Program-made: the position numbers and the translations under genes
The notes under the pieces: generated by a model
What the model was told of the DNA's origin: nothing
The model's database searches: none
The model's input: only the letters and a program-made list of their open reading frames with translations
Assembly (NCBI GenBank): GCA_964057225.1
Contig: OZ059896.1
Coordinates: 11,222,001 to 11,286,000 of the forward strand
Length of the DNA stretch: 64,000 bases
From: Auanema rhodensis
Taxonomy: Eukaryota > Animalia > Nematoda
Direction of reading: 5' to 3'
Shown here: positions 23,068-59,300 of the stretch, one piece after another
How positions within the stretch are numbered: the first letter of the stretch is position 1
How the letters are laid out: every line of letters starts with the position of its first letter

Positions 23068-23549
23068 TTATTCTTTTCCTCTAAGGAACTTGGAAAGGAA
23101 ATCTTTAGGCTTAGCTTCAACATTTTCACGGAACAAATAGTTGCGAACGTGGTCAGTGTTGTAAAAAGCATAACGGATCGAATATATATGCTGAAAAATT
23201 AATTTTGAGCAAAACTATTAGTGACAAAAATTACCTGTTTAGTTTCACCAACAAGTCTATCAACAACGCGAATGTCGGTCAAATGAGCATTTTTGGTGAA
23301 CTGTTGCTTAAGCACCGAACGAAAAACCCCTAAAGGCATATCCTGGAGCCCAAAATCCCACCAAAATTTAGGAGTCAAACGTTGACTACGATAATAAGTT
23401 TAAATAAATTTAAAAGGAAAAGAGACATACAGTTCCTTATACACTTGAAGAACAGAATGACGAGCTTGTTCTTTAGTTACTGATTGAACAGGAGCAACGG
23501 TGCGTGCGACTCCCGCACCTGCACGAACAATTTTTCCACTGGCAGACAT
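23068..23549 (-). CDS. nuo-3: Complex I subunit NDUFA6 (LYR family)
   Basis: MSASGKIVRAGAGVARTVAPVQSVTKEQARHSVLQVYKEL|QRLTPKFWWDF...HLTDIRVVDRLV...PKDFLSKFLRGKE*. Confidence 0.92.
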
Positions 23550-23950
23550 TACGACAAAGTATCACCACGAGTCACCTAAAAATAGCATTATTATTTTAAT
23601 TTTATTGTGATTTGAATAAACTTTACCTTAGCTTCTAGAAATTCAACCTTTCTTTCAAGAAGGCTTAGTTTATCAGAGAGCGTTGAAATCTTGCTACGGC
23701 AAGATAATTCTAAAATTCAAGTTATAGACAAGTGTGGAATCAGAAATTATACCAAAACTGGACAAAAAGTTTGAGATGCTCTTTATGTTATCAGCAATTA
23801 TCTGAAGAATAATATATAAATACAATTTCTTTCTTATTTATAACATGAAAATTTGTTTCCAGAGCAAAACTTATTACAAACCTGAACGTATTCTCTATTG
23901 TCCCAATCGTCCCGAAGCTGCCTCTGAACAGTTCCTACTCCAGGGTGCAT
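23549..23950 (-). CDS. brk-1: BRICK1/HSPC300, WAVE complex subunit (4 coding exons; stop overlaps nuo-3 ATG)
   Basis: MHPGVGTVQRQLRDDWDNREYVQ|IIADNIKSISNFLSSFE|LSCRSKISTLSDKLSLLERKVEFLEAK|VTRGDTLS*; the DWxNREY, SCRSK and LEA-x-V motifs are those of BRICK1. Confidence 0.92.
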
Positions 23951-24009
23951 CCACCTTAAATTTTTATCATTCAATAATACTTTACATTTTATTTTTTTTG
24001 TAATCTTAC

Positions 24010-24090
24010 CAGGTAGAGGAAACTTGTGATAGCGACAGCGAGCGCGTTTTCTGAAGGAGTCATGTCAGCGCTTGAGTCGTTCGTGTCAGG
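24010..24090 (-). promoter_or_regulatory. Putative promoter and non-coding first exon of brk-1
   Basis: GC-rich patch (AGCGAGCGCG, GAGTCA) followed on the minus strand by a CTG|GTAAGA donor ~55 nt before the brk-1 acceptor. Confidence 0.4.
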
Positions 24091-24208
24091 ACCAATTTTT
24101 AAACAAAATAATAACTATTAAGATATTTATTGTTAACAATAGCATTAAAATATAATACGATAACCGTGAAATATGACATAAAGAATTTCATAAATAAAAT
24201 AATAATAA

Positions 24209-25346
24209 TTAGTGAGAAGCAAAAAAAAGTTTCTTTACATTTTTCACTTTTTGCCTGCATGTCGAGAATGGGCATTGTTCGTTTTCTAGCATTTCCAATT
24301 CATGAGCAATTGTACAGCTAAATTTAAGTAAAGTACTCGTATACAAAATAGTTATATCTTCCTACCAGCACGGTAGCAGTAAGAATAGTGTTTGGTCCAT
24401 TACGCAGTGATCTATCGGGCAAAACCCATCCCTCAGTTTTATGTTGTTTTGCGGTTCTTAAATAAATTAAATCACAACACCAATAAGACTTATTCAAGAC
24501 CTTTCATCTTTTGGCATATAGGACAGTTTGAAGAAGTTATTTTTTCAGCATCGGATTTACATAAAAGATGACCACAGGCTAGAACTATCATCTACAAGAG
24601 AAATTTTTTTTCATTATTTTCAATTTCGCAACCTTGTGAGCAAGATATTGTTCTAAGCATATAGCACACTCGAAGTGTTTTCTTGTCCGCAATAGTTTAG
24701 TAGATGAATACCCGGCAAAGGCTATCTCATCAAAAACCATAAAGCCTTTCTGAAGCTTATTTGAAAATTTTAATTATGGGTGACTTACTATGTTATCAAC
24801 TATGACGAGGGTTCTGCAGGACGGAATGCCTAATAAATACCATTTTGACCGGAGTTTCTTAGAAACACCTTTGAAAAAAAATCTAAAACATGATATAAAC
24901 GAGAGTGATAAGATTATACAACCTCACTCCTAATTGATTCTCCATTTTGAGGTGAAATTGAATTTGTAAGAAATCATTTTTTCGAGCTTCGAGATCGTTT
25001 AAGAAATCTCTCCTGATAAAACAATGAACGTGTTTCAACGTATAGTAGTAATACCTTTATATAAGTATACCTGAACATGATAAACTCTTTCAAGAAATAT
25101 TTTGAAAAATCTTCTGAGCTACTTGGTGCGAGATCAACTGAGTTGATGTTTCTTGGTAAAATTCCCATGATTGGAATTTTATCATAATCTTTCTATAATA
25201 ACAGTTGAATAAGGAGTTAAGCTTATGAATATTGCCTGAAATACGATGTAAACAGAACAGCACGGCTTCATAATCAGATTTAATTCCGGTTGTATAATTG
25301 AAATTTCCATTTTCGGATTCTCAATTGTATGGTCCCACACTTCCAT
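24209..25346 (-). CDS. RING-finger protein (one RING-HC variant plus a second degenerate RING-like module)
   Basis: Spliced C-terminus FECAICLEQYLAHK|MIVLACGHLLCKSDAEKITSSNCPICQ...CPIDHC...LPCCCT...QCPFSTCRQKVKNVKKLFFASH*. The start codon is uncertain. Confidence 0.7.
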
Positions 25347-25554
25347 CTAACGAAAAAAACCATGTCATTCGTACCAGTATTAAGATATTCAATGAGAACT
25401 GATTACATATGCTTGTTCAATGTAGTATACTAACAATTTTTATTAATTAAATTAATAATTCTTATTTTGTATTTAAAACAAAAATATAACTCTGGCTGAA
25501 CGTCCTAGTAAATTATAAATTTGAGAATCATAACTTCTGCGCAAAAATCTGGTA

Positions 25555-27969
25555 TTAATTTTTAGATTGAAACAATTTGCTTTTCAAAACAGCTATTTTT
25601 TCTGCTTGTGTTGAACAATTCATAAGTTCAGATTCATAAATACAAATTGGAGATTGTCCTAGTTTTTCTAATAACCTAATGGATAATTGTTCTGATCCAA
25701 GCAAATATTTTTTATTGGAACCGTCGTAGTCGCCGTAGTTCTATAAAAACAAATCATAAAACAGAAAAACACATTTTAATTTCTCACTTGCAAAGTATGT
25801 TGCCAAGATATGAATATAATCGGTACAACATTCTGCTCTTTTCCGACCCACTGAGATTTAGTGACTAATTTCCCATTCTATATAACAATATAATTTACGA
25901 ATTTTATATAATATACCTCAATCAAAACTTGATCGTCGATGAAAACTCCAGCACTATTGATACAGCTTCCGCCAAAATATGAAGATGGAGCAATCTAGAA
26001 GTAAATTTATGAATAATAATAACTCAAAAATTAAAATTACTTTATGTAATCCTCCCTTTACAAACATTTCATGATATGCTTCCACACCTTTTCCGAATCG
26101 AAGTTGCTTAGCTATAGTAACCTAAAAGGAATGAACGATGTTTTCAATAGGAGGAAGGATTGCTTGCATTCTTCGGGTCGTCCAAATTAATTCCAAACGA
26201 ATCTTTTGAAACTACTGGTCCACTATAACTACTTCCATGCTTATTTTTTACTACCTCTTGAATCTTAAGAATCCTTAACGCTATATATAACTTAGATGAT
26301 GAATTTGCACTGAAAAAAAAATAAATAAAGTTGTCTACAAGTAATTAAAACTTTTCGATTAGTTCACTGATGAAATCTTTGTGAAGAACTGTTTCAGCCA
26401 AAGAAGGTGTTAAACAGTCTTGCAAAGCTAAAGCGAAAATAAAATTTAGCCACGCACTTCCTGAAGTTGCACTTTCTCTCGTCATTTTTTTTGCCAATAA
26501 CTCAGCTGTGGGTTTGATACCCTGAAAAAAAAAATTGTTTCAGGTAACGCGGGAAAAACTAACATCTATGCCAGCAACAGCAAATCCACCAACAGCTCTA
26601 GACAGAACTGCTGGGCTAGCAGATTTTGAATTGGAGTTTACCCAATTGGATAAACATTGCCAAGAATCCGGGTTCCCTAATCGTAATCGAAAAACACAAA
26701 AATTAGTAATTTGAAGACTCATTCTTACCTGCTAAAGGAATCAACAAGACTTGAAACATCATTCCAGGATCTCAGTTGATTAACTTGCTTTCTTAGATCA
26801 ATATCAATTTTTCTCAACACTCGAGCATCAAAATATCTTAACTTAGCAAAAACAGAAGATAAATCCACGATTTGTTGAATCGTGAACAAATTTTTATTTC
26901 TGAAACAATTCCATATCGTTTTAATATGGTTACATATTAAAACGCCTTACTCAGTAATTCGTTGAATTGCAGGCTTAAGGAAAACAAGATCCCGTCTTTG
27001 ATGTAGTCCCAGGCACCTGAAATGTATCGAAATATATCTTGAGCTTTTTATCAATCACAATACCTTATAAACCCAATAATATGAGATACTGTCATTATTG
27101 GAAGTAAAGAAACAGCATGCTTGTAAACAGATTCACGCCAAGCATTAGAAGCAGGTCGATAATAAAGAAGTAAAGTAAGAAGATGAGCAGGATTATTCAG
27201 TGTCCTTAAATAAAGGCTTTTTAAAAAACACTAGATTATATTATTAACTTTATTTGTTCATGTATTGTTGTAGATATAACATCCTCTGCCTGTTTTGAAA
27301 ATTTATAATTAGTTGCTGTGGCTAAGTGGATCATCGGAATTAGAGCAGTTAGCACCGATTCACTTTTTTCCAAGTTAGCACAATTTTCTATATTATATAA
27401 TTATGTACAAATTATTTTATTGAAATACCATTCCAGAATTGCTCAACATCACGAAAACATTGAGTTTTGTTTAATCCTAATTTCAACAAAGATGTTAATA
27501 TTGGTATACAGTCTGCTACTATTAATTTTTTAGAAACCCTAGACCAACTCCTGTAATAGAAATCTGAGAAAAATTGTTGCAATATCTATAATACTCCTCT
27601 ATGATTTCATTGGAGATCTTAGAATCATCATGCAAAGTAGAAAACCCAAATAAAAGATCTTTCATTTGAGTGATTGATAAGACTGTTTGAGAATCAACCC
27701 ACTGAAATACAAAAAAAAAGATTTCCATTGTAAATGATAGAATTACTTTCTTAGCTTCATGGACTGATCGAAATTTAATAAAATCTGAAGAGCTCGTTGA
27801 GCTTGTTGAACATATATTTTCTTTCAAAACATCATCCACCATTTCTACATAAAATATATAGGAGCATACTAGGTGTTTATATACCAGTGAACACCGCCTC
27901 TTTGGACCCAACTGAACCTCCAGAAATAGCCCTTTTAACTAATAGTCCAGGCTTTAATATGCGCAGCAT
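25555..27969 (-). CDS. Mitochondrial FAST-kinase-family protein with C-terminal RAP domain
   Basis: Basic presequence-like MLRILKPGLLVKRAIS; C-terminus LLGSEQLSIRLLEKLGQSPICIYESELMNCSTQAEKIAVLKSKL resembles a RAP domain. Internal exons only partly traced. Confidence 0.65.
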
Positions 27970-28106
27970 TCTAAAAACCTAAAAGAACCCGACATTGATG
28001 AAATGCTATTCGATTGAAATATAGAACAGAATAAACTTCCAAAATAAAAACTTAATAAACAACAATTTTTATTCTTAACAAAACAACAAATTCTAACTGA
28101 ACATAA

Positions 28107-29000
28107 CTAAAGAAGAGCCGATGATTCAACTAAATGATTTCTAATAGCAGCATGAAGACATTCATGTACATCTGCAGTTACTTGCTTAGATGTTGCAATG
28201 AGAGTTGAAAAATGATCTACATGAACTCTATTTTGCAGCTCTACAAGAATAACGTCATCTTTGCCAGAAATAGTTGCTAGCTGGAATAAATTGAATTACA
28301 TACGAAAACGGATTAAGAGAGTACCGTAAGTCTAGGCAAAAGATCAGTTTCTTCTCGAGAATTAACGTCAACTACCGGTGTACCGTCAACTATGCCACAA
28401 GTGACAGCGGAAACGAGACCTTTCATTGGGATTCCAGCATCAGCCAAAGCCAATGATGCTGCATTTACACAAGCAGCAAGATGAGAACCATCGCCCTGCA
28501 ATAACTTTTATTTGGGGAAAAGGATAAAAACCTAACTTGAATAACTTCAAAGAAAATGTCAATCTGGGCTCTGGGAAAAGTGCTCGTAATAATAGCCGAT
28601 TCGAACGCTTTTTCAAGTAAGCGACCAAATTCGGTAGACTTTCGGTCACCACGAGGTCTATTTTTTCGATCAACAGAAGAAAACGTAGCCATACTAAATA
28701 TAATATTTTACATGTATTCATGCTCGTTAGCAAGCAAACCTATATTGGCAGTTTATGACACATTTATCTTCCAATTGTCTGGATCTTTTTCCTTCATGAG
28801 GACCGTACACAGCACAAAGAACCTAGAAACATTTCACATTAAAAAGAAATAGAATATTAGTTTGCTACCTTCGTGTTTCCTTGCTCTATGTATGAAGAAC
28901 CTTCGGCTTTGGGATATACTCCAAGTCTACAATTAATATTACGAATTTGATGAGGTCTACGACCATCTAATCTGAACCCATGTTCACTAATAACCATCAT
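28107..29000 (-). CDS. exos-4.1: Exosome subunit Rrp41/EXOSC4
   Basis: [22 protein letters not shown]...GSSYIEQGNT...VYGPHE...MATFSSVDRKNRPRGDRKS...GDGSHLAACVNAASLALADAGIPM. Confidence 0.95.
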
Positions 29001-29446
29001 TCTGAAAGCTTTCAATAATGATTAAAAAAAAAAAATTCTACCTGTCTGAGATTCGTTAACGGTATCTGTTATCTTGTTTTCTTCAACGTTTATTGGTGTT
29101 TTAGAAGATGATAATACGGACTCAGTAGGTGTAGCTTGGCCTTGTTTGAAAAGAACTTTTGGAGCTTGTTCAGCGAATACTAGCATAAGTCGGCGATTCA
29201 CTCGCATATGCTTGTCGATGCCTGAAGTATAAGAAATATTCCCCATTTACAAAAATTTCAAGCTTACAGTCACTGACGCACCGACTTTCCTGATTGTTTA
29301 GAAAATGCGAATTATAGTCACTCACACAAGATCCAAAACAACGCTCGGTTAAAGTATTATATACGGTGAGGAATTCTCTGAGCTATAAATATAATTTCCA
29401 ATACGGAATTCAAAAAATATTCTACCTGCGTTAAATCTTGACTCAT
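28997..29446 (-). CDS. tin-9.2: Small Tim chaperone (Tim9b/Tim10b-like, twin CX3C)
   Basis: MSQDLTQ|[39 protein letters not shown]|[12 protein letters not shown]. The stop is TGA 28997-28999 if intron 29002-29041 is spliced, or TAA 29022-29024 if it is retained. Confidence 0.88.
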
Positions 29447-29748
29447 AAAGAGTTGTATAGCAAGCTAAATATTAAATTATTTAATAATATTTTCTTAAAG
29501 TTTTTTATAAAGCAAATTTAATTAACTTTTGAAAATTTTAAATAGTAAGAATAATTTTTACCTACGTGCAGCTAAAAATGTTCGCAAATCTGTACGTAGT
29601 AAGAAATATTTCAAACTGTTGGAAAATGTAAATGCAAATACTTATGAATTATGTAGTTTTAGTAGTAATGATCCGTACTATGTTGTGTTGTGTTGTGTTG
29701 TATTCAATTTTAAAATATTAAATTTATTTACAATTACTTTTCAGTAAA

Positions 29749-30687
29749 ATGACTAATATAATAAAGTCTTCGTCTAATAATTTAATGTGTTCATTGGAGG
29801 AAATTAATTTCCGAACAAAACATAAGTTGGTGCATCCTTTGGAAAGCTTAAATCCGACTGCACCGCAGAAAGAACTTGTTCCCGATCGCAAAAAAATGGT
29901 GAAGGAGTATGTCCGACTTCCTGCAAATACAGCAACATGCTCTGGAAATTATGTTCGATCTCCTACCGTTCTTAAAGAAGCGACCTTATACCTATTAAAT
30001 GTCTTTCACGGGCTCAAAGAATCACAATTGGCTTTGTCGTATACATTTGTTTCAAATCGTTTACGAGCTGTTCGTCAAGACTTAATCGTGTCAAACAATT
30101 GGAATGCGGAAGCAATGCTTATATTGGAACAAATGATACCTTTCTATCTAGAAACTCTCCATTTGGGATTATCAACTATCTTTAGTTCATTTGATCTGAT
30201 TCTTCACTTAACAGAACTGCAGGAATGCTTTTCTAAGTGGTTTAACTGCTCTGGTTCTACGAAACGAAATGTTGATATTATAGCCAGTTTTTTATTGTAT
30301 ACTTATCATAGAACTTCGTATGATAGATCATATTTTTCTCTTCTACATACTTTACCAATGAGCTTGAAATCTCTTGTGCAGTCGTTATTATCATCTAATA
30401 GGAGTTGTAATTATGTTCATTATTTCAAGTTACTGAAGAGTATATCTTCAAAAACCATACTATATAGTACTGTATATTTGACAGAAGATATAAGAGTTCG
30501 TGCCACTGATGTAATTTCTATTGCATATAAAAGTAAAAATGCTCAATTACCTAAGGATATAGTCTGTAAATGGTTAGGGTATTCAGTATCTGATGATTTT
30601 GGTTTATCAGAATCGAATCTCATTTTAGTCTCTGATTTAAAAGTTAGTATTTCATCTTGTTGGCCCAAATCTCTTTTTAATATATAA
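29749..30687 (+). CDS. SAC3/GANP/THP3-domain protein (SAC3D1-like), single exon, 312 aa
   Basis: MCSLEEINFR...HPLE...MVKEYVR...RSPTVL...YTFVSNRLRAVRQDLIV are SAC3/GANP motifs; TTTTCAG lies 4 nt before the ATG. Confidence 0.85.
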   Translation: MTNIIKSSSNNLMCSLEEINFRTKHKLVHPLESLNPTAPQKELVPDRKKMVKEYVRLPANTATCSGNYVRSPTVLKEATLYLLNVFHGLKESQLALSYTFVSNRLRAVRQDLIVSNNWNAEAMLILEQMIPFYLETLHLGLSTIFSSFDLILHLTELQECFSKWFNCSGSTKRNVDIIASFLLYTYHRTSYDRSYFSLLHTLPMSLKSLVQSLLSSNRSCNYVHYFKLLKSISSKTILYSTVYLTEDIRVRATDVISIAYKSKNAQLPKDIVCKWLGYSVSDDFGLSESNLILVSDLKVSISSCWPKSLFNI

Positions 30688-31107
30688 TATTAAATTTGAA
30701 ATCCTGTTCTTGTCATAATGTGATTATTACTGGTTAATAAATTTATGTTTCTAGCATTTTTGTATTGTAACACCAAGAAAATCTAAGAGAATAGCATATT
30801 AAATTACACCACTTACTTAGAAGAAGCCTTTTTGTTTGCACGGCTGTTTGATATTCCTGAACGAACATTTACGGACTTTTTCAGAAACATTATTTCCAAA
30901 ACAGTTCATAAAATTCGCAATAAAACGTCATTTTTCTCTCGTTAGCTTCGAAACTTTTAATTTTTCTCAAGTTATGAGTATTTTTAATAGCCATTTTGTG
31001 CGATTAGGAAGCTGGCTCATTTCGGCTCAAGTATTATTTTTCAACATTTTCTTTGGCTCGTAAAATGCTTTCTGATTTGAATTTAACAATAGTAATTTAA
31101 AGATAAG

Positions 31108-32945
31108 ATGGATCAAGTTGTGATGATTACTGATCTAGTTTGGATACCGCGAGGTGTTCCAAAAGAGATTCCTGACAAAGTTAAACTCACCGAGGAAGAG
31201 TTAAAGGAACTTATTGAAGGTTGTAAATTTGATCGTCTTTACTAATTCAATTTTTAGGAGGGGTTGCTGAAACAACAGATAATGATGATTCCGATAATGA
31301 GAAAATGGAAGAAGACAAACCTGTATGTTTGTAAATTTATTGAGTTTATTTTTATTTTTTTTAAAGGAAGCAGAAGCTAAAGGAGGACTTAGAGGCTCTG
31401 CTCCCGACGAAATTACCTCTGACAAAGAAGAAAATATCGAAGAAAAGTATATGAAAGACTTTGATGAAGAAGATAAAGAGAAAGGGTATTATTTCTTTAA
31501 TGGTTGGGTAAACTGAGTAAATCCTTCTAGAATGAGAGGAATAGCCGTATATGCTTCCAACAAAGATGATCCATATATAACTGAGCATGTTGATAGCGAC
31601 AATGAAGACGAAGATAAGGATGACTTTATAATAAAACCTGATGATAATTTACTAGCAGTTGCTAAAATTGATAAAGTAAAATTTTCCACGATTTTCTTTA
31701 AACTGTATTTATAATATCATTCAGAACGAGTATACTATGGAAGTTTACGTTTATAATGAAACTAATGGTGACTTTTATTGCCATCACGATTACATCCTTG
31801 AAGCTCCACCTCTCTGTATTGAACCAATTTTTTATGATCCAGGCAATGATACTGATGGAAAAGTAAAATGAAATGAGGTTAAATCACTAAATTACTTTTC
31901 TTCTAGGGGAATCTAGTAGCTGTAGGAACAATGGAGTCGGAAATTCATATCTGGGATTTGGATATTGTCAACTCTTGTACTCCTTTCTTAACCTTGGGTA
32001 AAAAACAAAAATGTACGTATATTGAAAGTTGAATTCGAATCATTAAACCACTGAAATATAGCTAAAAAACGTACCAAGAGAGATGGAAGCCATCAAGGAC
32101 ATAAAGATGCTGTGATTAGTTTAGCTTGGAACAAATTGATGGAGCATGTAATGGCTAGTGGAGGTAGTTATAATTAGTTATTTTCGAGTATATTTCGAAC
32201 GTAATCAGGCGCTGACCAGCAAATAATTTTATGGGATTTGGATGAAGCAAAACCTGCTCAGTCTATTAGCAATCGTCATGGAGAAGTTTTTATACGGTTT
32301 CGTTCCTTTTTGTTTATTCGTATTCTAGGTCCAATCCCTAGCTTGGCATCCCATTGAAGCCACCTATATTCTATCTGGTACAATGAAGGGAAGTGTGGAA
32401 GTTCTTGATTGCCGAGAAGCAGTTGGAGATCCATCTGCTCAATGGTCTTTTGAAACACAGATTGAGAAAGTTATTTGGAATCACTTTAACCCTTTTTACT
32501 GCTTTGTCGGCTCTGATGATGGTATGTTGAATTTTAATTAGTATGTTTCCTAGTATACGAATTTTTTCAGGTTTTGTAAGATATTTGGATATGAGAAAAC
32601 CAGGTGATGTCATTTGGGAGCACAAAGCTCATGATGGATCTCTTGGAGGTTTAATTTTAAGTACTAAAATTAGAGGGCTTCTGAATTCTCTTGGCCATGA
32701 TGGTGTACGTTCTGATTTGTAAATATTTTACTAGTTAATGATTTAAGATTTTAAATTCGTATAAGGTGGATGATGATGGCACGATTAATAAAATTCATTC
32801 GGTTCCGTTGAACCTCGGATCATTACATTCAGCTGCTTTCAATCCAGAAGTAGGAACAGTTTTAGCTGCTGGTGGATCAGAAGGAGATTTATTGAGACTC
32901 ATAGATTTAACGAAACATGAAGCGATTGTTCAATCGTTCCAATAG
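31108..32945 (+). CDS. PWP1: Periodic tryptophan protein 1 (WD40, ribosome biogenesis)
   Basis: MITDLVWIPRGVPKEIPDK, DPYIT, DNLLAVAK, EVYVYNE...YCHHDYIL...PLCIE, GNLVAVGTMESEIHIWDLDIV, GHKDAVISLAWN. Confidence 0.93.
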
Positions 32946-33272
32946 AAACTTACTCTTTAACTGTTTGTTGCAACTTTCGTTTTGAAAGGAATTCTTGTTG
33001 ATTTGTTTTTGTTACAATGATTATAGTTTATACATGAAATGTTATCGTTTTTTTGTAAAGTTTTCTGCTTTTGTTCCATTTAGCATAGAGTTGGCAAAGA
33101 ATTCCAGCGAACAATCGAGTTAACGTCCACGGTTCGCTCCCTCATCAGCTTTTCTGATTCTGAATGTTTGATGTAGTCGGAACAAATGTGATTTTCCATC
33201 GACTGCTTGAATGACGTTTTCGTTGTTCCTTATTTAGAGAGAAATTTCTAAGATATTACAGAGTAACTTTCA

Positions 33273-33865
33273 GCTCCTGCTCAATTTGCAATAAAGCTTC
33301 TTCTTCGTTTAGATTCGCGGGTGGACCTTAAAAAACCAAATAAATACATGTGTGTAATCAAGATTGTAAAATATACAAACATTAAAAAAAAATGTTAAAT
33401 AATATTGAAAATACCTGTAGAATTAACGTCGGCCAGAACGCACGACGCCTTCACCTGTCTTTTGAGTCTCAGAAGTGTTTCATAGAAGACTTCTAAATAC
33501 ATTAAATTTATTGTTAACGGGATAACAAAAAAATAAACATACTTCGCTAACATCTGAAGAACGCAGAGATGGATCCAAGTGGCCCCGCACTAAACACAAA
33601 ATTTGTTTAATAACTCTAGGAAAAGTTTTAAATTTATGAAATAGGAACATTGTCTTAAAGATTGTTATAAATGAAAGCAAAAAGTTGAGAGGTTTTGTAT
33701 ACCTGCTTGGTGACGAAAAAGAATATCGATGCCTTGAATCTTCTCCAATAAAGATCTGACTAAAACTTCTCTCGTTTCCCGATCCATCCAAAACCACCTA
33801 TATAAGACATAAATTAAATTATAACCCATAGTAAAAATATAAAAACAATTAGAAATCATATTCTC
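33273..33865 (-). pseudogene. Fragment of an unidentified intron-containing gene; second copy inside the Maverick remnant
   Basis: 33272-33612 is near-identical to 35320-35670 apart from indels; exon-like pieces with GT-AG borders encode ...NSTG|PPANLNEEEALLQIEQEL. Frames do not join cleanly. Confidence 0.6.
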
Positions 33866-34787
33866 AGCCGTATATGCTTCCAACAAAGATGATCCATATA
33901 TAACTGAGCATGTTGATAGCGACAATGAAGACGAAGATAAGGATGACTTTATAATAAAACCTGATGATAATTTACTAGCAGTTGCTAAAATTGATAAAGT
34001 AAAATTTTCCACGATTTTCTTTAAACTGTATTTATAATATCATTCAGAACGAGTATACTATGGAAGTTTACGTTTATAATGAAACTAATGGTGACTTTTA
34101 TTGCCATCACGATTACATCCTTGAAGCTCCACCTCTCTGTATTGAACCAATTTTTTATGATCCAGGCAATGATACTGATGGAAAAGTAAAATAAAATGAG
34201 GTTAAATCACTAAATTACTTTTCTTCTAGGGGAATCTAGTAGCTGTAGGAACAATGGAGTCGGAAATTCATATCTGGGATTTGGATATTGTCAACTCTTG
34301 TACTCCTTTCTTAACCTTTCCATTGAACCTCGGATCATTACATTCAGCTGCTTTCAATCCAGAAGTAGGAACAGTTTTAGCTGCTGGTGGATCAGAAGGA
34401 GATTTATTGAGACTCATAGATTTAACGAAACATGAAGCGATTGTTCAATCGTTCCAATAGAAACTTACTCTTTAACTGTTTGTTGCAACTTTCGTTTTGA
34501 AAGGAATTCTTGTTGATTTGTTTTTGTTACAATGATTATAGTTTATACATGAAATGTTATCGTTTTTTTGTAAAGTTTTCTGCTTTTGTTCCATTTAGCA
34601 TAGAGTTGGCAAAGAATTCCAGCGAACAATCGAGTTAACGTCCACGGTTCGCTCCCTCATCAGCTTTTCTGATTCTGAATGTTTGATGTAGTCGGAACAA
34701 ATGTGATTTTCCATCGACTGCTTGAATGACGTTTTCGTTGTTCCTTATTTAGAGAGAAATTTCTAAGATATTACAGAGTAACTTTCA
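33866..34787 (+). pseudogene. Partial tandem duplicate of pwp1 with an internal ~0.8-kb deletion
   Basis: 33866-34318 matches 31543-31995 and 34318-34787 matches 32803-33272, with only a few differences; the 5' exons are missing. Confidence 0.92.
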
Positions 34788-35026
34788 AACGCAGCTTCTT
34801 TATGAAATATTAGTAGTATATAAAAGGTTGGACGGTTATTTTACCGTTTCCTACACTTTTTGCACCTTTTAGCTATTTTAATGCACAAAAACATCACAAA
34901 AATCTGTCTTAACTGATCGAAAATTGGTCATTTCTGAAAAATGATATTTTTTGTACTGGACGGTCTTTTGACAATTTTACCCACATTCAACATTTCCAGC
35001 CTTTTTGAATATTTTTAGTATTACAA

Positions 35027-35113
35027 ATGAAGAATTTAAGATTAGACAAAGCCCTGAAGCCTCTAACTGATTTTGATCTTTTGGATTTAGTAGAAACATT
35101 AGAAATCCAGAAT
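35027..35113 (+). pseudogene. Relic N-terminus of a Maverick adenain-like cysteine protease
   Basis: MKNLRLDKALKPLTDFDLLDLVETLEIQN resembles the PL[ST]xFDL...L.I start of Polinton proteases; truncated. Confidence 0.5.
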
Positions 35114-35667
35114 TGTCTCTCATAAACATTTATCGAAACTTTGCCACCACGCTACAAGGGATACAACAAAAAGAAATAGACATCATAATCAACAAATTCT
35201 TTCTCCATTATTTTTTTGCAAAGCAGATAATATGTCAATAAACATTAACAGCATAATAGAAAACGAGATTCTTCTAATCTGAATCATCTGGCCCTGAGAT
35301 CGATTCGTATAATAGATTGAGCTCCTGCTCAATTTGCAATAAAGCTTCTTCTTCGTTTAGATTCGCGGCTGGACCTTGAAAAAAACCTAACATTAAAAAA
35401 CAATGTTAAATAATATTGAAAATACCTGTAGAAATAACGTTGGCCAGAACGCATGACGCCTTCACCTGTCTTTTGAGGCTGAGAAGAAGTAAGTCAAGTC
35501 TTTCATAGAAGACTTAAAAGACAGGTGAGTAAGTGTTTCATAGAAGACTTCTAAATACATTAAATTTATTGTTAACGGGATAACAAAAAAATAAACATAC
35601 TTCGCTAACATCTGAAGAACGCAGAGATGGATCCAAGTGGCCCCGCACTAAACACAAAATTTGTTTA

Positions 35668-35769
35668 ATATGGTTTTTCGTGAATTATCTTTTTCAAATT
35701 TCCATCAACTAGTATTCTTGGTCGACCGAGACGTTGTTCATCTTCAAGGTCTTCATTTCCTTCAAAAAA
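35668..35769 (-). mobile_element. Mariner transposase HTH/linker fragment
   Basis: FFEGNEDLEDEQRLGRPRILVDGNLKKIIHEKPY resembles the mariner F..G..dLeDe.RsGRP...lk.ii...P segment. Confidence 0.65.
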
Positions 35770-36160
35770 ATAATTTTATTCAGAATATATGATCACTACA
35801 CATGCATTAAATAATTATATATAAAGAGTAGTTATTATATGCTGTTTATACTTTTATAATTAATTTTATTATATCCTGCCAAATATATAAAAAATGTCTA
35901 TTTGAATTTGAAACATCGATTACTTTTTCCGGTACCTAATATATTTGATTAGTTCGAAAAATTAAGAAAAGTTGTTGAAACTCAAATCTAAGGAGAACAT
36001 AACGATAATAATCAGGGATGAAAATCACAAGCAACGCGAACTACAGAAGAAAAGGAAGTCTATTTTTTATTTACAAAAGTTAGAATGAGGTGAAAGAATG
36101 TGATGTTGGCAGTCTCTCTCGTTTCTCTGCGTCTCTGGTCACTCGTCACTCTTCCACTTT

Positions 36161-45024: not shown

Positions 45025-45046
45025 TCTGAGAAAGACTAACTTAACA

Positions 45047-45086: not shown

Positions 45087-46337
45087 AGAGCTAAATAATC
45101 TTTGAAGATGCAAAATGTCAGCTAACTGAGTGCGAGCAAATCATCAACAGCAAAGCATAGTGAATGCGACCAAACTGAAATTGTTCTGCTGAATATTCCA
45201 GCGATCCAAAACAAGATGGAAGATATGGAAAAAATGTGTCCGTTCAATTACGATTGTTCAAAAGTCTAAGATTGTGTGAATTACGATATGTATGTATGTA
45301 TGTTCGAGATGATTGTCTTGCGAATATCATAAGATATTTTATTCATCTTCCAAACTTCATCACCTTTTGTCAAACAAGTTTTTTTGTTAATATTCTAAGA
45401 GAGCAAAGATCTATAAAAAGATTTAAACAGTGTCGTTTAGTGCATTTCCGTAACAGTAACTTAAGCAAATCAACCATTATGCGAAACTTTTGCTTTTAAT
45501 CGTTGATACAACTGAAACTAAAGATATAACAATGTTTTTCTTTATTATATACATGGTTACTAAAAAAAAATTACATTGATGAATATATATCTATACGTTT
45601 TTACTTTAATATATCTAAATATTATATAGAAATTACACAATTGTGACAATTATGTTATTGATATCCTTATACGGTTTTTGATCTGTGTTGTTCAGGTTTT
45701 GATCACTGTGATTAAATAGGATGACATATTGCACTTAGGCTATGCTTTACCGAAATCAAGGAAGCAACCTGACCAAATCATGATTCAGTTGAATTCGTAA
45801 GGACAGCTGGTTTGACTGACGGATCGAGAAAACCCACAAGCATATCCGGTTTTCTGATACCCGGGGACCTATCATTGCATATCGCAGTAAATTTATTTAA
45901 GAAATTCAAAAAAAGTTATGATTAAGAGGAAGTTTAATTATTAATCTAAAAAAAACATGTTTCATTGGTCAAGTTTTTATAAAGTGGTGAAAGTTAAAAT
46001 AATTTTGAAGGTGTGCATATCCTTCTCATCGTATAATTGTATTGTTTCATTTAAAGGTATAGCACATTGTATTCGAACACTTATAATTGTGTTTAAATGC
46101 TACTATTTGGACATAAAACGTACAATCAGAAGGTTTTCAGTTTTACGTCAACGTAGAACGCGAACATTTTATCGCCATTATGGCATCTGTCAAAGTCCTC
46201 CAATCGTAAATTGTTTGCATAGCTCCAGCTCAAACCTAGATATCCCCAATCAAATGATTTAACTTGATTCAAGAAGTTTTTCGCTCTTCAACGTTATTAG
46301 TCTCATATTCTACTTGATTATCCGAACACCGCTTAAT

Positions 46338-47541
46338 ATGAATCGTATAAAGGATGCGTTAAAAAGAAAAAAAAGGTTAGTATACATTTTACATATTTAG
46401 TTTAATTTATTCATTCAGAACCTATGATTCTGATTCAATTGGATATATTTCAACTAATTCTGATCATTCCTTTACGCGCTCTCAGTTTATCTTGAGACCT
46501 CATTCAGCATATAGTTCTCTAGCTTCATCGTCGTACACGCCCGTAAGTTTTGTCAACTATTGTTTTGAAAACAAATATGTTCAGTTTGATTATGAACACC
46601 TTCCATGTACATCCTATTCATCGAGCATTTTAAGTAAAGAAGGTTCTATTTATGATTCGGTTAGTAGTTCGAAATTGAAATTTTTTAAAAAAGTTTATAG
46701 CAATATGTGATGTGTTCTACACTGGATGAGTTTAGTATTTCAAGTGATTCAAATCAAAATTCAACTTATATGTTTACCAAAGATTCAGATAGCGAAGAAT
46801 CGGTATTTTTAAATTTTTAAATTACAATTTATATAATACATTTAAGATATATGCAACTTCGACAATAGATATGAGCACTACAATATCTGATGATTATGAC
46901 CTAGAAGATCTTTTTGAAGATCTTATTATAGATTCTTCTCATTACCATCCAAGGTTAGTTTGCTAGCTCTTCAGCACAGAAGAAAGTCGTTAAGCACATC
47001 GACGGAAAACAATACTCTGAAAAGAAAGCGATTACTCATCAAGGAACCAGATGATTCGAGCAAAATATATTTCTCGGAACAAATGTCAGGAAGAAAAAAT
47101 GTTCTTCCGTTTAGTGGGTCGATTCCAAGGTACATAATTACAAAAAAAATGTAAAACAGGTTTCATTCAGATCGATTTTGAAAAAAAAACCATCATTAAC
47201 CCATTCCCATATATATGAAGAAATTGAGAATGATTATTTATCTCCAGAACCTGAGGATGTAAGGCCTGTGGTAAGCGAATGTTTCGACAACATAATATTC
47301 ATCTTAAATTTTGGGTTACAGCCTCCCGAAAGACCAGCCGTTTTACCATTCCGAATATTCCCACCATGTAAAACATTTCAACCTCGAAGACTGCAGCCAA
47401 GGTATGCAACTAATAAGTTTGTTCAAGAGCTACTTATTCAGATCGGCATCAACAAGAAAACGAGCTAACCCTGTTCCAGAAGTTAAAAGAGCTTCATCGT
47501 TTAGTTTTGGATTTTTTACATTAAGTATAAGAAAAAACTAA
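46338..47541 (+). CDS. Unidentified Ser-rich, probably disordered protein with Tyr motifs
   Basis: Eight exons join in frame through GT-AG introns: MNRIKDALKRKKR|TYDSDSIGY...IYDS|...|IYAT...HIYEEIENDYLSP...|PPERP...SFSFGFFTLSIRKN*. Confidence 0.7.
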
Positions 47542-47630
47542 ATAAATGCTTTACTCATAAACATATATACAATCTCTCTTAATTTGAATCTGTTACTAAT
47601 ATATCTAATAAGGCAACTTATGGTCAATTT

Positions 47631-48233
47631 TCAATTCCATGCTTTGTCGAAAAGATTATTGAAAATTAAAGAAAGATCCAATCCAACGACTAATCCTACA
47701 TTTCCAGTTGATAAATAACCCAAGGTAGCAAACAAAACGCTTGATCTATCCTGCATTAATTGCGAACGTTGGAACCTAAATTCAAACATCTGTATATACA
47801 ATTCGTTTTTACTTACCTTGCCCGGTAGCATTTATCATATAGCTGAACTGAATTCATATTTCGAAGAGATAAATAAGTGATCGCGGGACCAAGCACAGCT
47901 CCGGCAACTGCGCCATTAACACCTCCATCGACAAAAGACTTTCTAAAAAGATCCGCAAATATAGGAGCAAATATATCTTACTTACGCTAATGATTTAGGA
48001 GTAGCCTCTTCCCTGTTAAACAAAAGCATACTAATAGGTCCCAAAATGGAACCAAGGAAAGCTCCTGTCTGGACAAAAAACTAATTTCAAAAAGGAAAAC
48101 AGAAGACAAGAACTACCTGAACTGTTCTAAATGTTACATGTATACAGAATTCAGTTCCAGGTCTAGGAATCTTCAACAGTTCGAAATCGGATTGTCTAAT
48201 TCCCAAGAAATTTTTCAGCCAATATGTCGACAT
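47631..48233 (-). CDS. DUF1757-like small membrane protein
   Basis: MSTYWLKNFLGIRQSDFELLKIPRPGTEFCIHVTFRTVQ|TGAFLGSILGP...GGVNGAVAGAVLGP...LYDKCYR...RFQRSQLMQDR...DKAWN*. Family name is from memory. Confidence 0.7.
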
Positions 48234-48537
48234 ATCTAATAAAAAAATGATTCAAATATAATGAGACTTCAAAATCGAAAAGTAAACTATGAAAAAACAT
48301 ATAAGAAACAAATTTAGTAAACGCAATTATTCATTGGTTTATGATAATGTAATTTAAAATTAATCAATGCATACAACTCAATTGTAATATTACAGAAAAT
48401 GGTGCACATGCACAAGTACTTTGATTAGTGAATGCTGTTAACTCGAGATAATTAGTGAGTATCGTTTTACCGGCATACCACAAAGCTACAAAGGAATATA
48501 CAAGCTTAAACTATTGGACAAATTCTTTTAAAACATT

Positions 48538-53540
<5,003 letters not shown>

Positions 53541-53797
53541 TGTGCCAAAAAATTATCTACAAAACTTTTCAATGAAATATTGAATTCAAAAACGGAAAAA
53601 ATACACTGAAGATGCAAATTAGAAAACAGGCGGAGAAGCGTCTTTAAACTTTGCAAGGAATGCATAGATGGTGTTAAACAGCGTGCATAAATGGAAAATT
53701 GTAAAACACGTACAAAAAAAACAATTTATTGTCAGATCGTAACAAGAACAAATAACAACGACAACAGTTCAATAAGGAATTAATCGTATCATAGAAA

Positions 53798-56154
53798 TCA
53801 TTTTCTTTTTTTGGAATTCCACTTTTCAGCTTTATTTTTAAGGCTATCAACCAGGGACGGTTCTTTTTTAGTTTCAACTTTGTTGAATTTCTTGGCTTGT
53901 GCTTGAAGTTCAATGAGTTTTGATCCCTGAATATTTTTAAGTTAAGCAAAATATAAATAAAATAAAAACCTTAGCATGTTTTTCAGTTTGTTCGATAGCG
54001 AAAGCACTGTCGGTCAAAAGAGCCTTGAATCTGTCATCTGCTAAAACAGCAGAAGCAGTGCCATAATTGGCTTCCTTAAGTTCAGCTCTCGTTTTTTCTT
54101 TCTAAATTGAAGGTCATTTTTAAAAACAAGAAATGAAAAGTAACAAACCTTCTTCTTTCTTGGCTCATCAGTACATTCTCGCTCTTCTTTGGCCAGTTCA
54201 CGAGCCTCTCTCATTTGTTGCTTTCTTTCTTTTCTTTTTTCTTTTCGTTTTGCTAGGTATGTTTCATAACCTTTTTTTTTGGGCTGAATTTGAAAAGTTT
54301 TAAAGAAACTTCGGCGTATTTACCTTTTCAGATTCTTTCGCTTGTTTAATATCAGGAACAATTTCCTCATCACTGCTTTCTTGATCATTTCTTTTTGCCA
54401 AAGCTTTTTCAATATCACTCGAATCACTTTCTTCATCTTCTTCTCCGCTATCGTTATCACTATTTGTATTCCATGATATCTGAACACAATTAGGTATGAC
54501 TTGATTTGACAATAATTTTTACTTTTAATCTATCTTGCTTCGGCTTTTCGTCGATCATTGATAGAAGGGCATTTCTTCTTGACATGATGGTTTCTTCATC
54601 TTCAGAATCGGATGCAATCAACCCAGATATATTAGCACCATCATTTCTAACATATGCGTATATACTAATAATTAAGGATAAAAAAGACAAACTTGAAGGC
54701 TTCCCGAAGATTTATGGTTCGTAATTCATTATCCTCATCCCATTGAAGCTTTGCTCCTGTGTAAGTCATCGCTGACGCAATCGAAAAAAACATCTTATAT
54801 AGAGTAATTTATACAAAACTCACTTTATCTTTGGATTTGTATTTTTGTGTATTCACATCACTTTCAAACATCTGCTCTTTCAAACGGTCCTCCTAGAAAG
54901 GTTTAAATAGTGTAAGAAAAATTGAAAAGACAATACATCAAAATCCATATCATCAGGAACAAAACGCAAATCCATTTTAAGTCCACTGTCTTCAAACAAG
55001 AAACCATCACAATTTTCGTATATACTTGTAGCTGTAGCTTCTTCATCACATTCAATAATGGCATAATAATACTTCAGTTTATCAATATGATACTTCCTAA
55101 CTGCAATTTTAGTTTCTCTAAAAATATTAATAAGATGCAGACAAATATATTACTAAAGCTTACTCATCCATTTCAGCATTTTCATCGTAGTCTTCAATAG
55201 GTTTTGATAGGTGCAAACGGGGACCCAATTTATCCTCTTCTTCTAATCTTTCTTTTCCGAAGTCTGACAAATATATCGAAATTTTCTCCACTTTTCCACC
55301 CGTTGGCCTATAAATACAGTGCATCAACAAACAGTAAAATATGAAATGAAATAACATACACAAAAGAATTAACTAAAATGAATAAGTCTTCGGCTTTAAC
55401 GAGATCCCAATTCAAATTACAAGCTGCCAGACGTCGACTAGCCCATTCTACTTGTTCAGCATTACTGGAAATGGTTCCATGAAATAATAATGTTCAGCCA
55501 GTTGTACCTGTCAAGATGGGCAATATCAAGCTGGTTTTCTATATCAGCAGGAAGCTCCCAATCAGATTCTTCAGATTCACTATCATCATCTGAAGAGGAT
55601 ATGTTTCCTTCTCCACGAGCTAAGTCAACCTATAATAATATTGAAAAACAATGCTTACAGTAATAAGGTACCTTTATCGCATAATTATCTCCATCACCAT
55701 CATCGTCGTCTTCTTCTTCTTCGCTCTCTGATCCATCCGAAATTTTTGGTTCTGGTATGACTTGCTCTTCTAACTTTCCTTTCTTTTGTTTTTTCCTAGG
55801 TTTTCTTTCTTCTAAAAATTTATAATTTTTTCAACATTAAGTATTCCAAATTACGTTTGCTTTCTTCATCTTTTTCTTGATTTTGTTCTACAGTATACAA
55901 TTCATTTAAATTGTTCTTTTTTTTTCGAAGAGGCTTTCCTCTCCTGTCAATGCTAGTAGCATCGGCAAATTTTTCGTCTGTTAGCAAAGAAGAAAATCGT
56001 TTTTCTATCACAACCTGTAAATTTTCTATTCTCATAGATAATGCAAACTCATTACCTTCTTTTCGCTTGTTTTAATACCATCAAACTTCGGATCAGATCT
56101 GATGTGAGCAAATCTCTCATCAGAAAGAGCTTTCTTTTTAGAATTTTTTTTCAT
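53798..56154 (-). CDS. ESF1: ESF1 pre-rRNA processing factor
   Basis: DERFAHIRSDPKF, IDRRGKP, DLARGEGNISSSDDDSE, RRLAACNLNWDLVKAEDL, IYLSDFGKERLEEE, DDRFKAL. Confidence 0.92.
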
Positions 56155-56332
56155 ATCGCTGTAAAATTAATATGAATTTTTTCTATTGCTTATGGGAGGT
56201 AAATGGATATCAAACCATATTTGCTCTGATACAAAGACTACATTTAACTTTATTAAATTAGAAAAAAAAACAAAAAGCTATATCCCAACAATAACAAAGG
56301 AAATAGACATATAATTTCATAAAAAAAAGCTC

Positions 56333-59300
56333 CTATTTCACATGAACACCACGAAGAGTTGGAGCGGTCATTTTAGAGGTACCACCAACGAGAAGTGGCT
56401 GGCCCTTCCAAGTCGCGATTCCATCTTCAGATACTTTCAAATCTTCAGCCACTGTTTCCCAGATCTAGAAGCAAATGATCTTTAAGACAAAAAAACCTTT
56501 TCAATACTTTTTTCTTAGGATTCAGAACAGCATCAGGCCTGTGCTCGTAAGGTGGGCAAGTAACTGGAGTTCCAGGAACAGCGGATGAATCTACCTCCAT
56601 CACTTCAACCTAGAAGAATCATTATACATATTATACACATAAAACATTTAGTAACCTTTTCAGGAGAAGAAGCGCACATGACCATGGCACGTGATTCAAC
56701 TCCTCTCATTTTTGCAGGTTTCAAATTACATAATACAACAACAAGTCGATTTTGCATCTAAAACTGAAATATATTTCAAGGAATACTGAAATATGTACCT
56801 GCTCAAGAGGAACCCATCTCACTAAGCCAGAAACAACAGTCCTAGGTTCGGGCTCTCCAACATCGATCTTTTCCAAGTACAGAGCATCAGCATCTGGGTG
56901 CTTAACACACTCAATTATTCTACCCACACGAAGATCGAGTCGTCCAACATCAATTGTGTCATCGGCAGCTGCTGAACGATTACAGAAAATTGAAAAAATA
57001 ATACACAGCAAAAAAACCTTCTCCAGCTTTCTTATTAGATTCTTGCTTTCCTTTCTTCTCATTCTTTTTAGCACTTTTATCTTCCTTCTTTGCCGATACT
57101 TCAGGAGCTTTAACTGTCGTAGCTACAGCAGGTGCAGCCTTCTGCTCTTTCTTGATATCAGGAGCAGAAACTTGTTTAACTTAGAAATAAAAGTAATAAT
57201 TTGATTTTTGCTGTAACCAACTTCCTGCGGCCTTTTCAGCTTGAACTAATTTGTTTTGAAGTTCTTGAACCTCCTTTTCTAGTTGAGCGTTGGCCTTTTC
57301 TAATTCCTGTAGCTTATCTTTAGTGAAAAGATTGCCTGACCATGTTACCGGTTAAAAAAAAACAAAAAGTGAAAAACTCACGTGCTTGTTCAAACTTTTT
57401 AGCATTTCCTTCGAGGAGTTGTTTTATGACAAGCTGGTTCTTATGAAGAACAGGGAACGTTTTGGCGAGTGCAGACATCTCTTGTTTTTTTTGCTTTTTG
57501 CCAGAAGTTGCACCTTCCTTAGGCTTAGAGTTGCTTTTACCTGAAAAAAAAATTTTTAAAGAAAAAAATGGGATCAAAATATCATGGAAAGAGTAAGGGG
57601 ACAAGACTAGGAAAAAACATAAAGGATATAAAAAGACTGCAAGAAAAGAGGGGATAGGCATCGACCCAGGCCTGCAAGTGAGTGAACAAATGACGCGATT
57701 CCAAATTATTTCACACTTGCCTTTATTTTCCTTTTTCTCAGGTTTTGGAGCGTCGGGAGTAGAACCACCAAACTGTTTTTTGAATTCATCGATTTTAGCT
57801 TTCTCGATTTTTTCAAACAATGGACTTGGCTATAAAGAAGAACTTATTTAATAATATATAAAACAAAATAATTACTTTTCCGATTTTGTGTCCCTCCTTA
57901 AGATGACAAATAGGATACGGAACATAAACAGGAAGTTCCTCAGCGCCGCACTGTTTTCGGATCTCCTGCGATACTTGGGGCATAATAGGATGAAGCACCA
58001 AAGAAATAAGGTAGGCTACATTAGCTGCAACTCCAATTATAGTTCCAGCCCGTTTCCTGGCAAAAATAATCATTGTAAAAATATTAAGATACTGATTACT
58101 TTTGCTCTTCATCTCCTTTCATAAGAACCCATGGTTGTTGAGCTTGCATGTACTGGTTTCCACGACGAGACATTCCCAGAATACATTTTACAGCATCTTT
58201 TAGCTTCACACCATCAAGTAGTGAATCCCATTCTTTTAAATCCTCTTGAATTCCACTCAGTAATTCAATGTCAGCAGGTTGTAAATTCATTGTAGGAACT
58301 ACTCCATTGAAGAAATTGACAAGGAAAGTTAGGGCACGATTGATGAAATTTCCAAGATTTGACAACAACTCCGAATTGACCTGTTTATGTAAAACTTTAT
58401 TGCATAAAAATAAATAAGTTACTTTCAATCCGAAATCATCCCATGAGAAACTGGTATCTTGTGATTCAGGTCTCATATACAGCAAATAAAATCGCCAAAC
58501 ATCAGGAGCTATTCCTGTACTTTTAGCAGTATCACCGAATACTCCAGTGCCTCGTGATTTGCTAAATAAAAAGAAATGATGTTGATACTTTATCAATCGG
58601 ACAACCTGAATTTGGTGTCTTCGTAATTCAAATATTCAGTGGCACAAAGATGATTAACAATTGTATAATTATCTTCAGCTCCTAGTTGTGTACAAGGGAA
58701 CATAACTCCATGGAAAGCAACATTATCCTAGAGCAATATTAAAATAGAAACAGAATAATGAAGTAATAAACGTACCTTTCCAACGAAGTTATAAAGCTCA
58801 ACTTGCTTGGGATTTTTCCACCACTTTACCCAATTGTCTCCTACAAGGGTTTTGGTGATAGAAAGGTATCCAATCGGAGCATCGTACCAAACATAGAACA
58901 CCTAAAAAGAACGACAATAATATAAGAATTAACAGTTTTATTATGCCTTGTCATCAAACTCAGCTAAAGGAACTTTGGTTCCCCACTTTAAATCTCGAGT
59001 AATACAGCGTTTTTCAAGTCCACCCTTTAATGATTAAAATATTTGTTGAACTTTTGCAAGAAGACTTACCTTAATCCATCCCTTAACAATTGAAATGGCA
59101 TTAGCAGACCAACGATTATCATTTTTAGTGATCTGTTCTTCAACATAATTTTTAACTTGATCCTTAACAAAAAATATCAGATAGAAACAAAAATAGTCAT
59201 ACTTGTAATTTATCTAAATGTAAAAAAATATGAGTTGATTTCTTAACAGATGGTTCTTGTTTACAAACATAGCATTTAGGCTGCTTTAAATCAATCTATA

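Follow-up and report, generated by a model that had tools for sequence, protein, structure and literature searches.

A 64,000-nucleotide (nt) stretch of the genome of the nematode Auanema rhodensis (contig OZ059896.1, positions 11,222,001 to 11,286,000; hereafter the window, within which all coordinates are counted) contains two loci at which a pair of unrelated proteins, BRICK1 with NDUFA6/nuo-3 and Tim10B with Rrp41/exos-4.1, is encoded by two complete open reading frames (ORFs) on one spliced transcript. We regard it as probable that both loci are conserved, true dicistronic genes in which the downstream protein is made mainly by leaky scanning, with the addition of spliced leader 1 (SL1) at the acceptor of the boundary intron as a possible second route. 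The textbook account, to our knowledge, is that nematode polycistronic precursors are always cut to one-gene mRNAs by trans-splicing; BRICK1/nuo-3 and Tim10B/exos-4.1 would be counter-examples to that rule, since two unrelated ORFs stay together on a mature, SL1-capped mRNA. An earlier reading of the sequence alone had placed a third locus, mars-1, in one system with these two. All three loci lie on the minus strand, and mars-1 is considered separately below.

Two cistron pairs on joined transcripts

The features of the two pairs are listed here in the direction of transcription. Protein identities were tested one exon at a time, with exons joined by script only for translation and for counting ATGs.

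23882..23950, minus strand: first coding exon of a BRICK1/HSPC300-like protein (ATG 23950-23948 with T at -3; model and PDB BRICK1 residues 7-23)
23753..23801, minus strand: BRICK1 coding exon 2 (joints 23709>23753 and 23801>23882 in an RNA contig of run X1; orthologous exon in the related loci L028, L029 and L030)
23627..23709, minus strand: BRICK1 coding exon 3 (PDB 3p8c_E residues 41-67, E 4e-6)
23576..23626, minus strand: boundary intron of 51 nt, GTAAAG..TTTTAG (cis junction in 4/4 runs; candidate dual cis/SL1 acceptor)
23431..23575, minus strand: shared exon with the last 8 BRICK1 codons, the stop/start overlap and then nuo-3 exon 1
23385-23235 and 23190-23068, minus strand: nuo-3/NDUFA6 exons 2 and 3 (model and PDB NDUFA6 matches)
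29446-29426, 29382-29268 and 29221-29042, minus strand: Tim10B (tin-9.2) coding exons (ATG at 29446 with T at -3; Pfam zf-Tim10_DDP, E 9e-10; RNA joints)
29002..29041, minus strand: boundary intron of 40 nt, GTAGAA..TTTCAG (junction 29001>29042 in 4/4 runs)
29000-28869, 28822-28740, 28693-28537, 28495-28325 and 28280-28107, minus strand: exos-4.1/Rrp41 cistron of 238 amino acids (aa) (Pfam RNase_PH and RNase_PH_C)

At both loci the upstream ORF is completed only across the boundary intron. The 75-aa BRICK1 ORF reaches its conserved C-terminus, VTRGDTLS, only when the GT-AG intron 23626-23576 is spliced out; its TAA stop (23551-23549) shares one A with the nuo-3 ATG (23549-23547), forming TAATG, and this ATG stands 26 nt past the AG. 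Human BRICK1 (3p8c_E) gives collinear matches over residues 7-23 (E 0.035) and 41-67 (E 4e-6), and the downstream protein, of 130 aa in the window, is identified as NDUFA6 by PDB matches. The 106-aa Tim10B ORF requires removal of the 40-nt intron 29041-29002, with the next exon starting at 29001, and the exos-4.1 ATG (29000-28998), only 1 nt past the AG, overlaps the Tim10B TGA (28999-28997) in the sequence aATGA. The exos-4.1 ORF opens with a tandem ATG-ATG, and after splicing the Tim10B TGA lies inside the tandem. The sequence-only reading had described just this layout, with acceptors needed to complete two short upstream ORFs, an exact stop/start overlap in each, and downstream ATGs placed 26, 1 and, in mars-1, 62 nt past the acceptor; all of its numbers are confirmed.

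RNA evidence from A. rhodensis comes from contigs assembled from four runs of one study and covers the stretch 23420-29419. The four runs contain about half of the words of that stretch, and we take the contigs to be RNA because they are spliced. The cis junctions 23573>23625 (BRICK1-nuo-3) and 29001>29042 (Tim10B-exos-4.1) occur in spliced contigs of all four runs. In each run one contig covers exos-4.1 together with Tim10B exon 3; three of these four contigs extend further, to Tim10B exon 2. In the joined contigs all introns are out, and the depth is about 160-800. The gene that follows exos-4.1 (about 25455-27970, minus strand), with a start about 135 nt past the exos-4.1 stop, is on separate RNA contigs, so that joining cannot be put down to neighbouring genes being generally unresolved.

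The C. elegans locus tin-9.2/exos-4.1 on chromosome IV (BX284604.4) is like that of the window in its proteins, their order and strand, the boundary intron, the 4-nt ATGA overlap and the joined RNA; it differs in the tail of Tim10B and in the position of the acceptor, which is 3 nt before the ATG in C. elegans and 1 nt before it in the window. The chromosome record (L011) annotates a 111-aa Tim10B gene at 3001-3488 and a 240-aa RNase_PH gene at 3485-4477, overlapping by 4 nt, and 17 C. elegans RNA-seq contigs from several studies (including L012-L018 and L020-L027) carry both ORFs with this overlap. The joined C. elegans RNA is SL1-capped; contigs L015 and L017 have the full SL1 at their 5′ end, 38 nt ahead of the Tim10B start. 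Among C. elegans contigs encoding exos-4.1, the ten longest are all dicistronic, and none of these carries a spliced leader (SL) at the boundary acceptor. L036, a transcript contig of another rhabditid, opens with the tail of SL1 and contains both ORFs with a 14-nt overlap, and the C. briggsae Tim10B protein is named 'EXOS-4.1, isoform b'. For BRICK1/nuo-3, a spliced transcript contig from a GC-rich nematode (L031) reads through the BRICK1 C-terminus, TGA, ACC, ATG and nuo-3. Both complete ORFs are thus on one spliced transcript in both pairs, and SL1 stands at the 5′ end of the dicistronic mRNA in C. elegans and in another rhabditid; the junctions in all four A. rhodensis runs and the joined C. 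elegans contigs bear out the expectation that cis-splicing gives dicistronic mature RNAs.

Contigs cannot prove a single mature molecule, and the label of the A. rhodensis runs as RNA is a guess; the joined forms might accordingly be chimeras of assembly or operon precursors caught in mid-processing, with monocistronic mature mRNAs as in SL2 operons. We consider this very improbable. The introns have all been removed, and depth is high; the joined form recurs across studies in C. elegans with SL1 at its far 5′ end, and again in L031 and L036; and the next downstream gene is not joined. Nor could the upstream proteins have an mRNA of their own, because the BRICK1 C-terminus lies behind the boundary acceptor and there is no AATAAA before the exos-4.1 acceptor, that is, within the Tim10B/exos-4.1 boundary intron.

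Ordinary SL2 operons likewise co-transcribe unrelated genes, and the gene after exos-4.1 behaves as an ordinary member of one. The two pairs described here are unlike SL2-type operon pairs in that the ORFs overlap with no intercistronic spacer, no 3′-end signal precedes the exos-4.1 acceptor, and the mature RNA, as seen in the contigs, remains joined. One practical consequence is that RNA interference against one cistron, or its deletion, will affect both. The joined layout of Tim10B/exos-4.1 is already annotated in the C. elegans record, and our literature search found no study of the nuo-3 and HSPC300 pair, of the tin-9.2 and exos-4.1 pair, or of the mechanism by which the second protein is made; the accessible part of the supplement tables of a Nanopore C. 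elegans trans-splicing paper does not list these genes.

Conservation across Rhabditina

Comparison of the loci with their relatives indicates that the layout is present in Caenorhabditis, Mesorhabditis, strongylids and other relatives, and that it has been kept across Rhabditina. Orthologues of Tim10B/exos-4.1 were sought with the natural 74-aa ORF around Tim10B exon 3 as query and then by full-length match, and the loci were fetched. An intron at the boundary of the two cistrons is found in Caenorhabditis sp. 36, C. elegans, Mesorhabditis, Nippostrongylus, Ancylostoma ceylanicum and the strongylid L010. In Caenorhabditis sp. 36 and Mesorhabditis belari the intron is followed by ATGA, as in the window. 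In the three strongylids (Nippostrongylus, A. ceylanicum and L010) the Tim10B stop is followed after 0-2 nt by a strong donor (such as TAG|GTAAGT), and from a good acceptor it is 8 to about 43 nt to the exos-4.1 ATG, such that the two ORFs are separated after splicing by +9, +10 and about +43 nt; the corresponding value in L036 is -14. From these comparisons we conclude that the conserved element is the intron at the Tim10B/exos-4.1 cistron boundary and not the overlap.

The order of Tim10B, exos-4.1 and the following gene is also kept, its counterparts being FAST_1/RESC6-like genes in C. elegans, C. sp. 36, A. ceylanicum and Mesorhabditis, and the whole is therefore probably an operon whose first two cistrons are joined.

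Relatives of nuo-3 were found as partial matches to the 61-aa ORF around its exon 2. In Ancylostoma caninum (L028) four BRICK1 exons lie directly upstream of nuo-3 with the last intron at the same position as in the window and its acceptor 27 nt before the nuo-3 ATG (TGA-A-ATG). The boundary intron is also kept in L032 and L034 (TAA-G-ATG); it has been lost in L029 and L030, where nuo-3 still stands 2 nt behind BRICK1. Across species the BRICK1/nuo-3 stop/start spacing runs from -1 to +3 nt, and the upstream ORFs of the two pairs are 70-127 codons long. In C. elegans the same protein pair is represented by HSPC300 (Y57G11C.1147) and nuo-3 (Y57G11C.12), whose clone names come from the same yeast artificial chromosome; the two genes presumably abut. 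HSPC300/Y57G11C.1147 has been described in a preprint as the WAVE-complex subunit of C. elegans. A stop/start overlap at an acceptor in two orthologously conserved pairs is not a matter of chance.

The layout also misleads gene predictors, which have produced chimeric or truncated models in Teladorsagia, A. caninum and C. sp. 36. At Tim10B/exos-4.1, public models are chimeric or truncated in Teladorsagia circumcincta (P0003, which fuses exos-4.1 exon 1 to Tim10B exon 3), in A. ceylanicum (P0001) and in C. sp. 36 (L008 4733-5222, an RNase_PH model cut to 147 aa), and the inability of predictors to place overlapping cistrons is probably the cause.

Start codons, splice acceptors and the route to the downstream protein

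Across the species compared, the conserved feature of the pairs lies in their start codons: the first ATG is weak, the second is strong, and ATGs are scarce in between. The first ATG has a T at -3 in both pairs of the window and in A. caninum, L029, C. elegans, C. sp. 36, Nippostrongylus and A. ceylanicum; the sole exception among those that could be read is L036, with a C. Position -3 of the second ATG is a purine in all species read. After its start the BRICK1 ORF contains not a single ATG in any frame over 214-227 nt (window, A. caninum and L029), compared with 12 ATGs in 397 nt in an A. caninum copy of nuo-3, and human BRICK1 has Met where the nematode BRICK1 proteins show Leu. In five species Tim10B retains two conserved Met codons (with C or T at -3) and has 0-1 out-of-frame ATG, as against 11-13 out-of-frame ATGs in exos-4.1. 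When synonymous codons were resampled with the protein held fixed, the window sequence of BRICK1 had 0 ATGs where 1.5 were expected (P 0.085) and that of Tim10B 0 where 2.5 were expected (P 0.025), for a joint P of about 0.002, while the two downstream ORFs, used as controls, were at expectation (P 0.82 and 0.53).

These features favour leaky scanning as the most likely source of the downstream protein, because the start contexts are weak and then strong, ATGs are depleted between them, the distance from stop to start varies among species, and reinitiation would have to follow rather long upstream ORFs. In the mechanism that we propose, one SL1-capped, fully spliced mRNA would carry either BRICK1 (75 aa) and NDUFA6/nuo-3 or Tim10B (106 aa) and Rrp41/exos-4.1; removal of the boundary intron in cis would bring the ORFs to within a few nt of each other or into overlap; and ribosomes would pass the weak first ATG and the ATG-poor stretch behind it to initiate at the well-placed second ATG. 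The boundary acceptor is probably derived from the trans-splice site of the downstream gene, and it can still take SL1, as is seen for nuo-3 in a hookworm (see below), which would yield a monocistronic mRNA and a second route to the downstream protein.

Comparable cases are the leaky-scanning bicistronic mRNAs of other eukaryotes, for example the polycistronic transcripts of green algae (PMC7896298). As in the pairs described here, a small upstream ORF begins at a weak start, intervening ATGs are scarce, and the second start is strong. The nematode pairs are unlike them in belonging to a phylum with a dedicated means of separating cistrons, and in having a spliced boundary intron that sets the spacing. 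They are compact and genetically tractable cases of an animal ribosome reaching a second ORF behind a first ORF of 70-127 codons, and they also allow a test of whether an acceptor that takes either the upstream exon or SL1 tunes expression.

In eukaryotes, ribosomes reinitiate poorly once they have translated a long ORF, except in the presence of special RNA elements. The exact overlaps in the window had been read as a geometry favouring reinitiation, whereby translation would resume at the ATG within TAATG or ATGA after termination on the upstream ORF; C. elegans, C. sp. 36 and Mesorhabditis share the ATGA form. As a functional feature, however, the overlap does not hold up across species, the spacing ranging from -14 to about +43 nt at Tim10B/exos-4.1 and, more narrowly, around zero at BRICK1/nuo-3, and at 70-127 codons the upstream ORFs are long. 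We therefore think that termination followed by reinitiation is an improbable source of the second protein.

Use of the boundary acceptor in trans has one piece of direct support. In A. caninum (L028 5623-5645) a G followed by the full 22-nt SL1 is joined exactly to the first exon base after the acceptor of the last BRICK1 intron. This piece (L028 5521-6349; GCA_003336725.1, JOJR01000697.1) lies behind a 100-N gap and continues into an intronless nuo-3, its 3′ untranslated region (UTR) and the next gene, and it looks like a cDNA-derived patch or a retrocopy; with either origin, it preserves the trace of an RNA in which SL1 was spliced to nuo-3 at the same AG that BRICK1 requires for cis-splicing. 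We note that the 249-aa methyltransferase model of this record starts inside the SL1-nuo-3 insert and looks mis-annotated. A search of the A. rhodensis genome itself for copies of SL1-exon junctions at the three acceptors found none, and the contigs of the four runs have no loose non-genomic ends at 23575 or 29001, an absence compatible with SL use there because contigs drop rare variants and the 22-nt leader is shorter than the assembly word. The proposal that an SL is added at the same AG thus has one documented case, nuo-3 at the homologous acceptor of A. caninum; no counterpart was seen at the acceptors of the window, nor among C. elegans exos-4.1 contigs in the ten that are longest, although contigs miss minor forms.

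There is precedent for such dual sites. In C. elegans, one and the same 3′ splice site is used in cis and in trans at sma-9 (PMC2904332), and the retained outrons that are cis-spliced in mett-10 mutants likewise employ a 3′ splice site both ways (PMC11347140), so that in both, as here, the site takes either an upstream exon or an SL and the products are joined or separate. The joined product of sma-9 is one long protein, whereas here there are two ORFs on one RNA, with trans use seen only in a relative of A. rhodensis.

These precedents, the hookworm SL1-nuo-3 junction and the strongylid intron, which lies wholly between stop and start like a converted outron, are the evidence for a regulated switch of the kind first suggested for these loci, in which the joined RNA from cis-splicing serves mostly for the upstream protein, the downstream one really comes from a monocistronic RNA made by adding SL1 or SL2 in trans, and the ratio is set by stage or tissue. 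We find this doubtful. No loose SL ends are seen in the window species and the longest C. elegans contigs are uniformly dicistronic; L029 and L030 have lost the BRICK1 boundary intron together with its acceptor, yet keep nuo-3 2 nt behind BRICK1; and the depletion of ATGs and the weak-then-strong starts would be pointless unless the joined RNA feeds the second ORF. Nothing was found that points to regulation or that unites the three loci in one cis/trans switch.

A related and more tentative idea, which we think unlikely, begins from the strongylid order of stop, donor, intron, acceptor, short leader and ATG, which looks like a former outron that has gained a donor. The boundary introns would then be former outrons and their acceptors still dual cis/SL1 sites, at which competition between the donor and the SL small nuclear ribonucleoprotein (snRNP) sets, and could regulate, the shares of downstream protein, a complex I subunit in one pair and an exosome subunit in the other, coming from monocistronic SL1 mRNA and from leaky scanning on the joined mRNA. 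If this were true, the donor/SL snRNP competition would couple or uncouple the stoichiometry of the two proteins by stage or tissue.

Several points weigh against our preferred reading of two dicistronic genes served mainly by leaky scanning. The case for leaky scanning is drawn purely from sequence; two or three ATGs remain in Tim10B, and scanning ribosomes would need to pass over them; and the single-species statistics of ATG depletion are modest, while the species compared are not independent. The SL1 evidence from A. caninum is no read count; it comes from a cDNA-like insert that follows an N gap of a draft assembly. The A. rhodensis runs are labelled RNA by guess only, though their spliced junctions show RNA, and contigs give no isoform quantities, so that a major monocistronic SL form could go unseen.

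The mars-1 locus and the genomic setting

The mars-1 locus is the known rhabditine fusion of methionyl-tRNA synthetase (MetRS) with p43, and stands as a class apart from the other two. The features concerned are as follows.

57541..57720, minus strand: predicted GC-AG seam intron of 180 nt (frame continuity; good donor consensus)
56333..57540, minus strand: p43/AIMP1-like C-terminal module of mars-1, with a Lys-rich linker, coiled coil and EMAPII-type tRNA-binding domain (stop 56335-56333)

C. elegans MetRS has a p43-like C-terminal domain with no separate p43, and the fusion probably arose in Rhabditina (PMC4394549). The rhabditine MetRS-p43 described by Havrylenko et al. (reviewed in PMC4394549) is like window mars-1 in combining a coiled coil with an EMAPII module and in the absence of any separate p43 found. 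In the window the EMAPII exons match Pfam tRNA_bind (E 1e-12), and the EMAPII exon is the only one found in the genome in a first-look search; a PDB search with the N-terminal part of the p43-like module gave no match. That mars-1 shares a mechanism with BRICK1/nuo-3 and Tim10B/exos-4.1, as had been proposed, is rejected: it is a known fusion, with no short upstream ORF and no overlap.

Peculiar to the window locus are the frame-preserving GC-AG seam intron and the Met that follows 21 codons into the next exon, which begins at 57540 and has its first ATG at 57478, 62 nt past the AG. This Met may be a relic of an old p43 start; by our estimate about one exon in three has a Met within its first 21 codons, and that of mars-1 is in this respect unremarkable. 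GC donors are in use in this species, as shown by a GC-AG intron of 46 nt (26122-26167, minus strand) in the gene downstream of exos-4.1, which is spliced in contigs of all four runs. We note also that the seam intron, at 180 nt, compares with 40-64 nt for its neighbours; its length is a multiple of three with no in-frame stop, and retention would add 60 residues.

The window is AT-rich (GC about 0.28-0.36), with introns of 40-50 nt, and the nearest protein relatives of the genes studied are in strongylid and other rhabditine nematodes. Rfam and phage megablast scans of the window gave no match. The genome, of 181 Mb in 112 contigs, contains the canonical nematode SL1 in thousands of copies: the SL1 22-mer plus GTA occurs 3,665 times with 2 mismatches or fewer, mainly as tandem repeats with a unit length of about 252 bp or about 341 bp, with arrays on contig C3 of the assembly (G000) at about 6,741,500-6,766,500 and about 14,134,300-14,140,200 (loci L001-L006). 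When 800 bp of the 252-bp array were compared with Rfam, no family reached the gathering score; the arrays may be working SL RNA genes or a satellite derived from such genes.

A 5′ UTR exon precedes the first coding exon of BRICK1 and ends at 24010, its joint being seen as a 12-nt overhang in run X1. An ATG at 24063 was considered as the BRICK1 start and rejected as out of frame, the true start being at 23950. In this region (24010-24063) the ATG at 24063 would open an upstream ORF of 37 codons, which a good acceptor, ccttcag at 24052, would remove if it is the SL site; the ATG probably lies upstream of a trans-splice acceptor at 24052. On either side of the pair are further genes on the same strand, a COQ3-like methyltransferase (22655-22906, minus strand) beginning about 150 nt past the nuo-3 stop and a RING-finger gene (24490-24740, minus strand) ending about 430 nt ahead of the BRICK1 5′ exon, and the BRICK1/nuo-3 dicistron may lie inside a larger operon.

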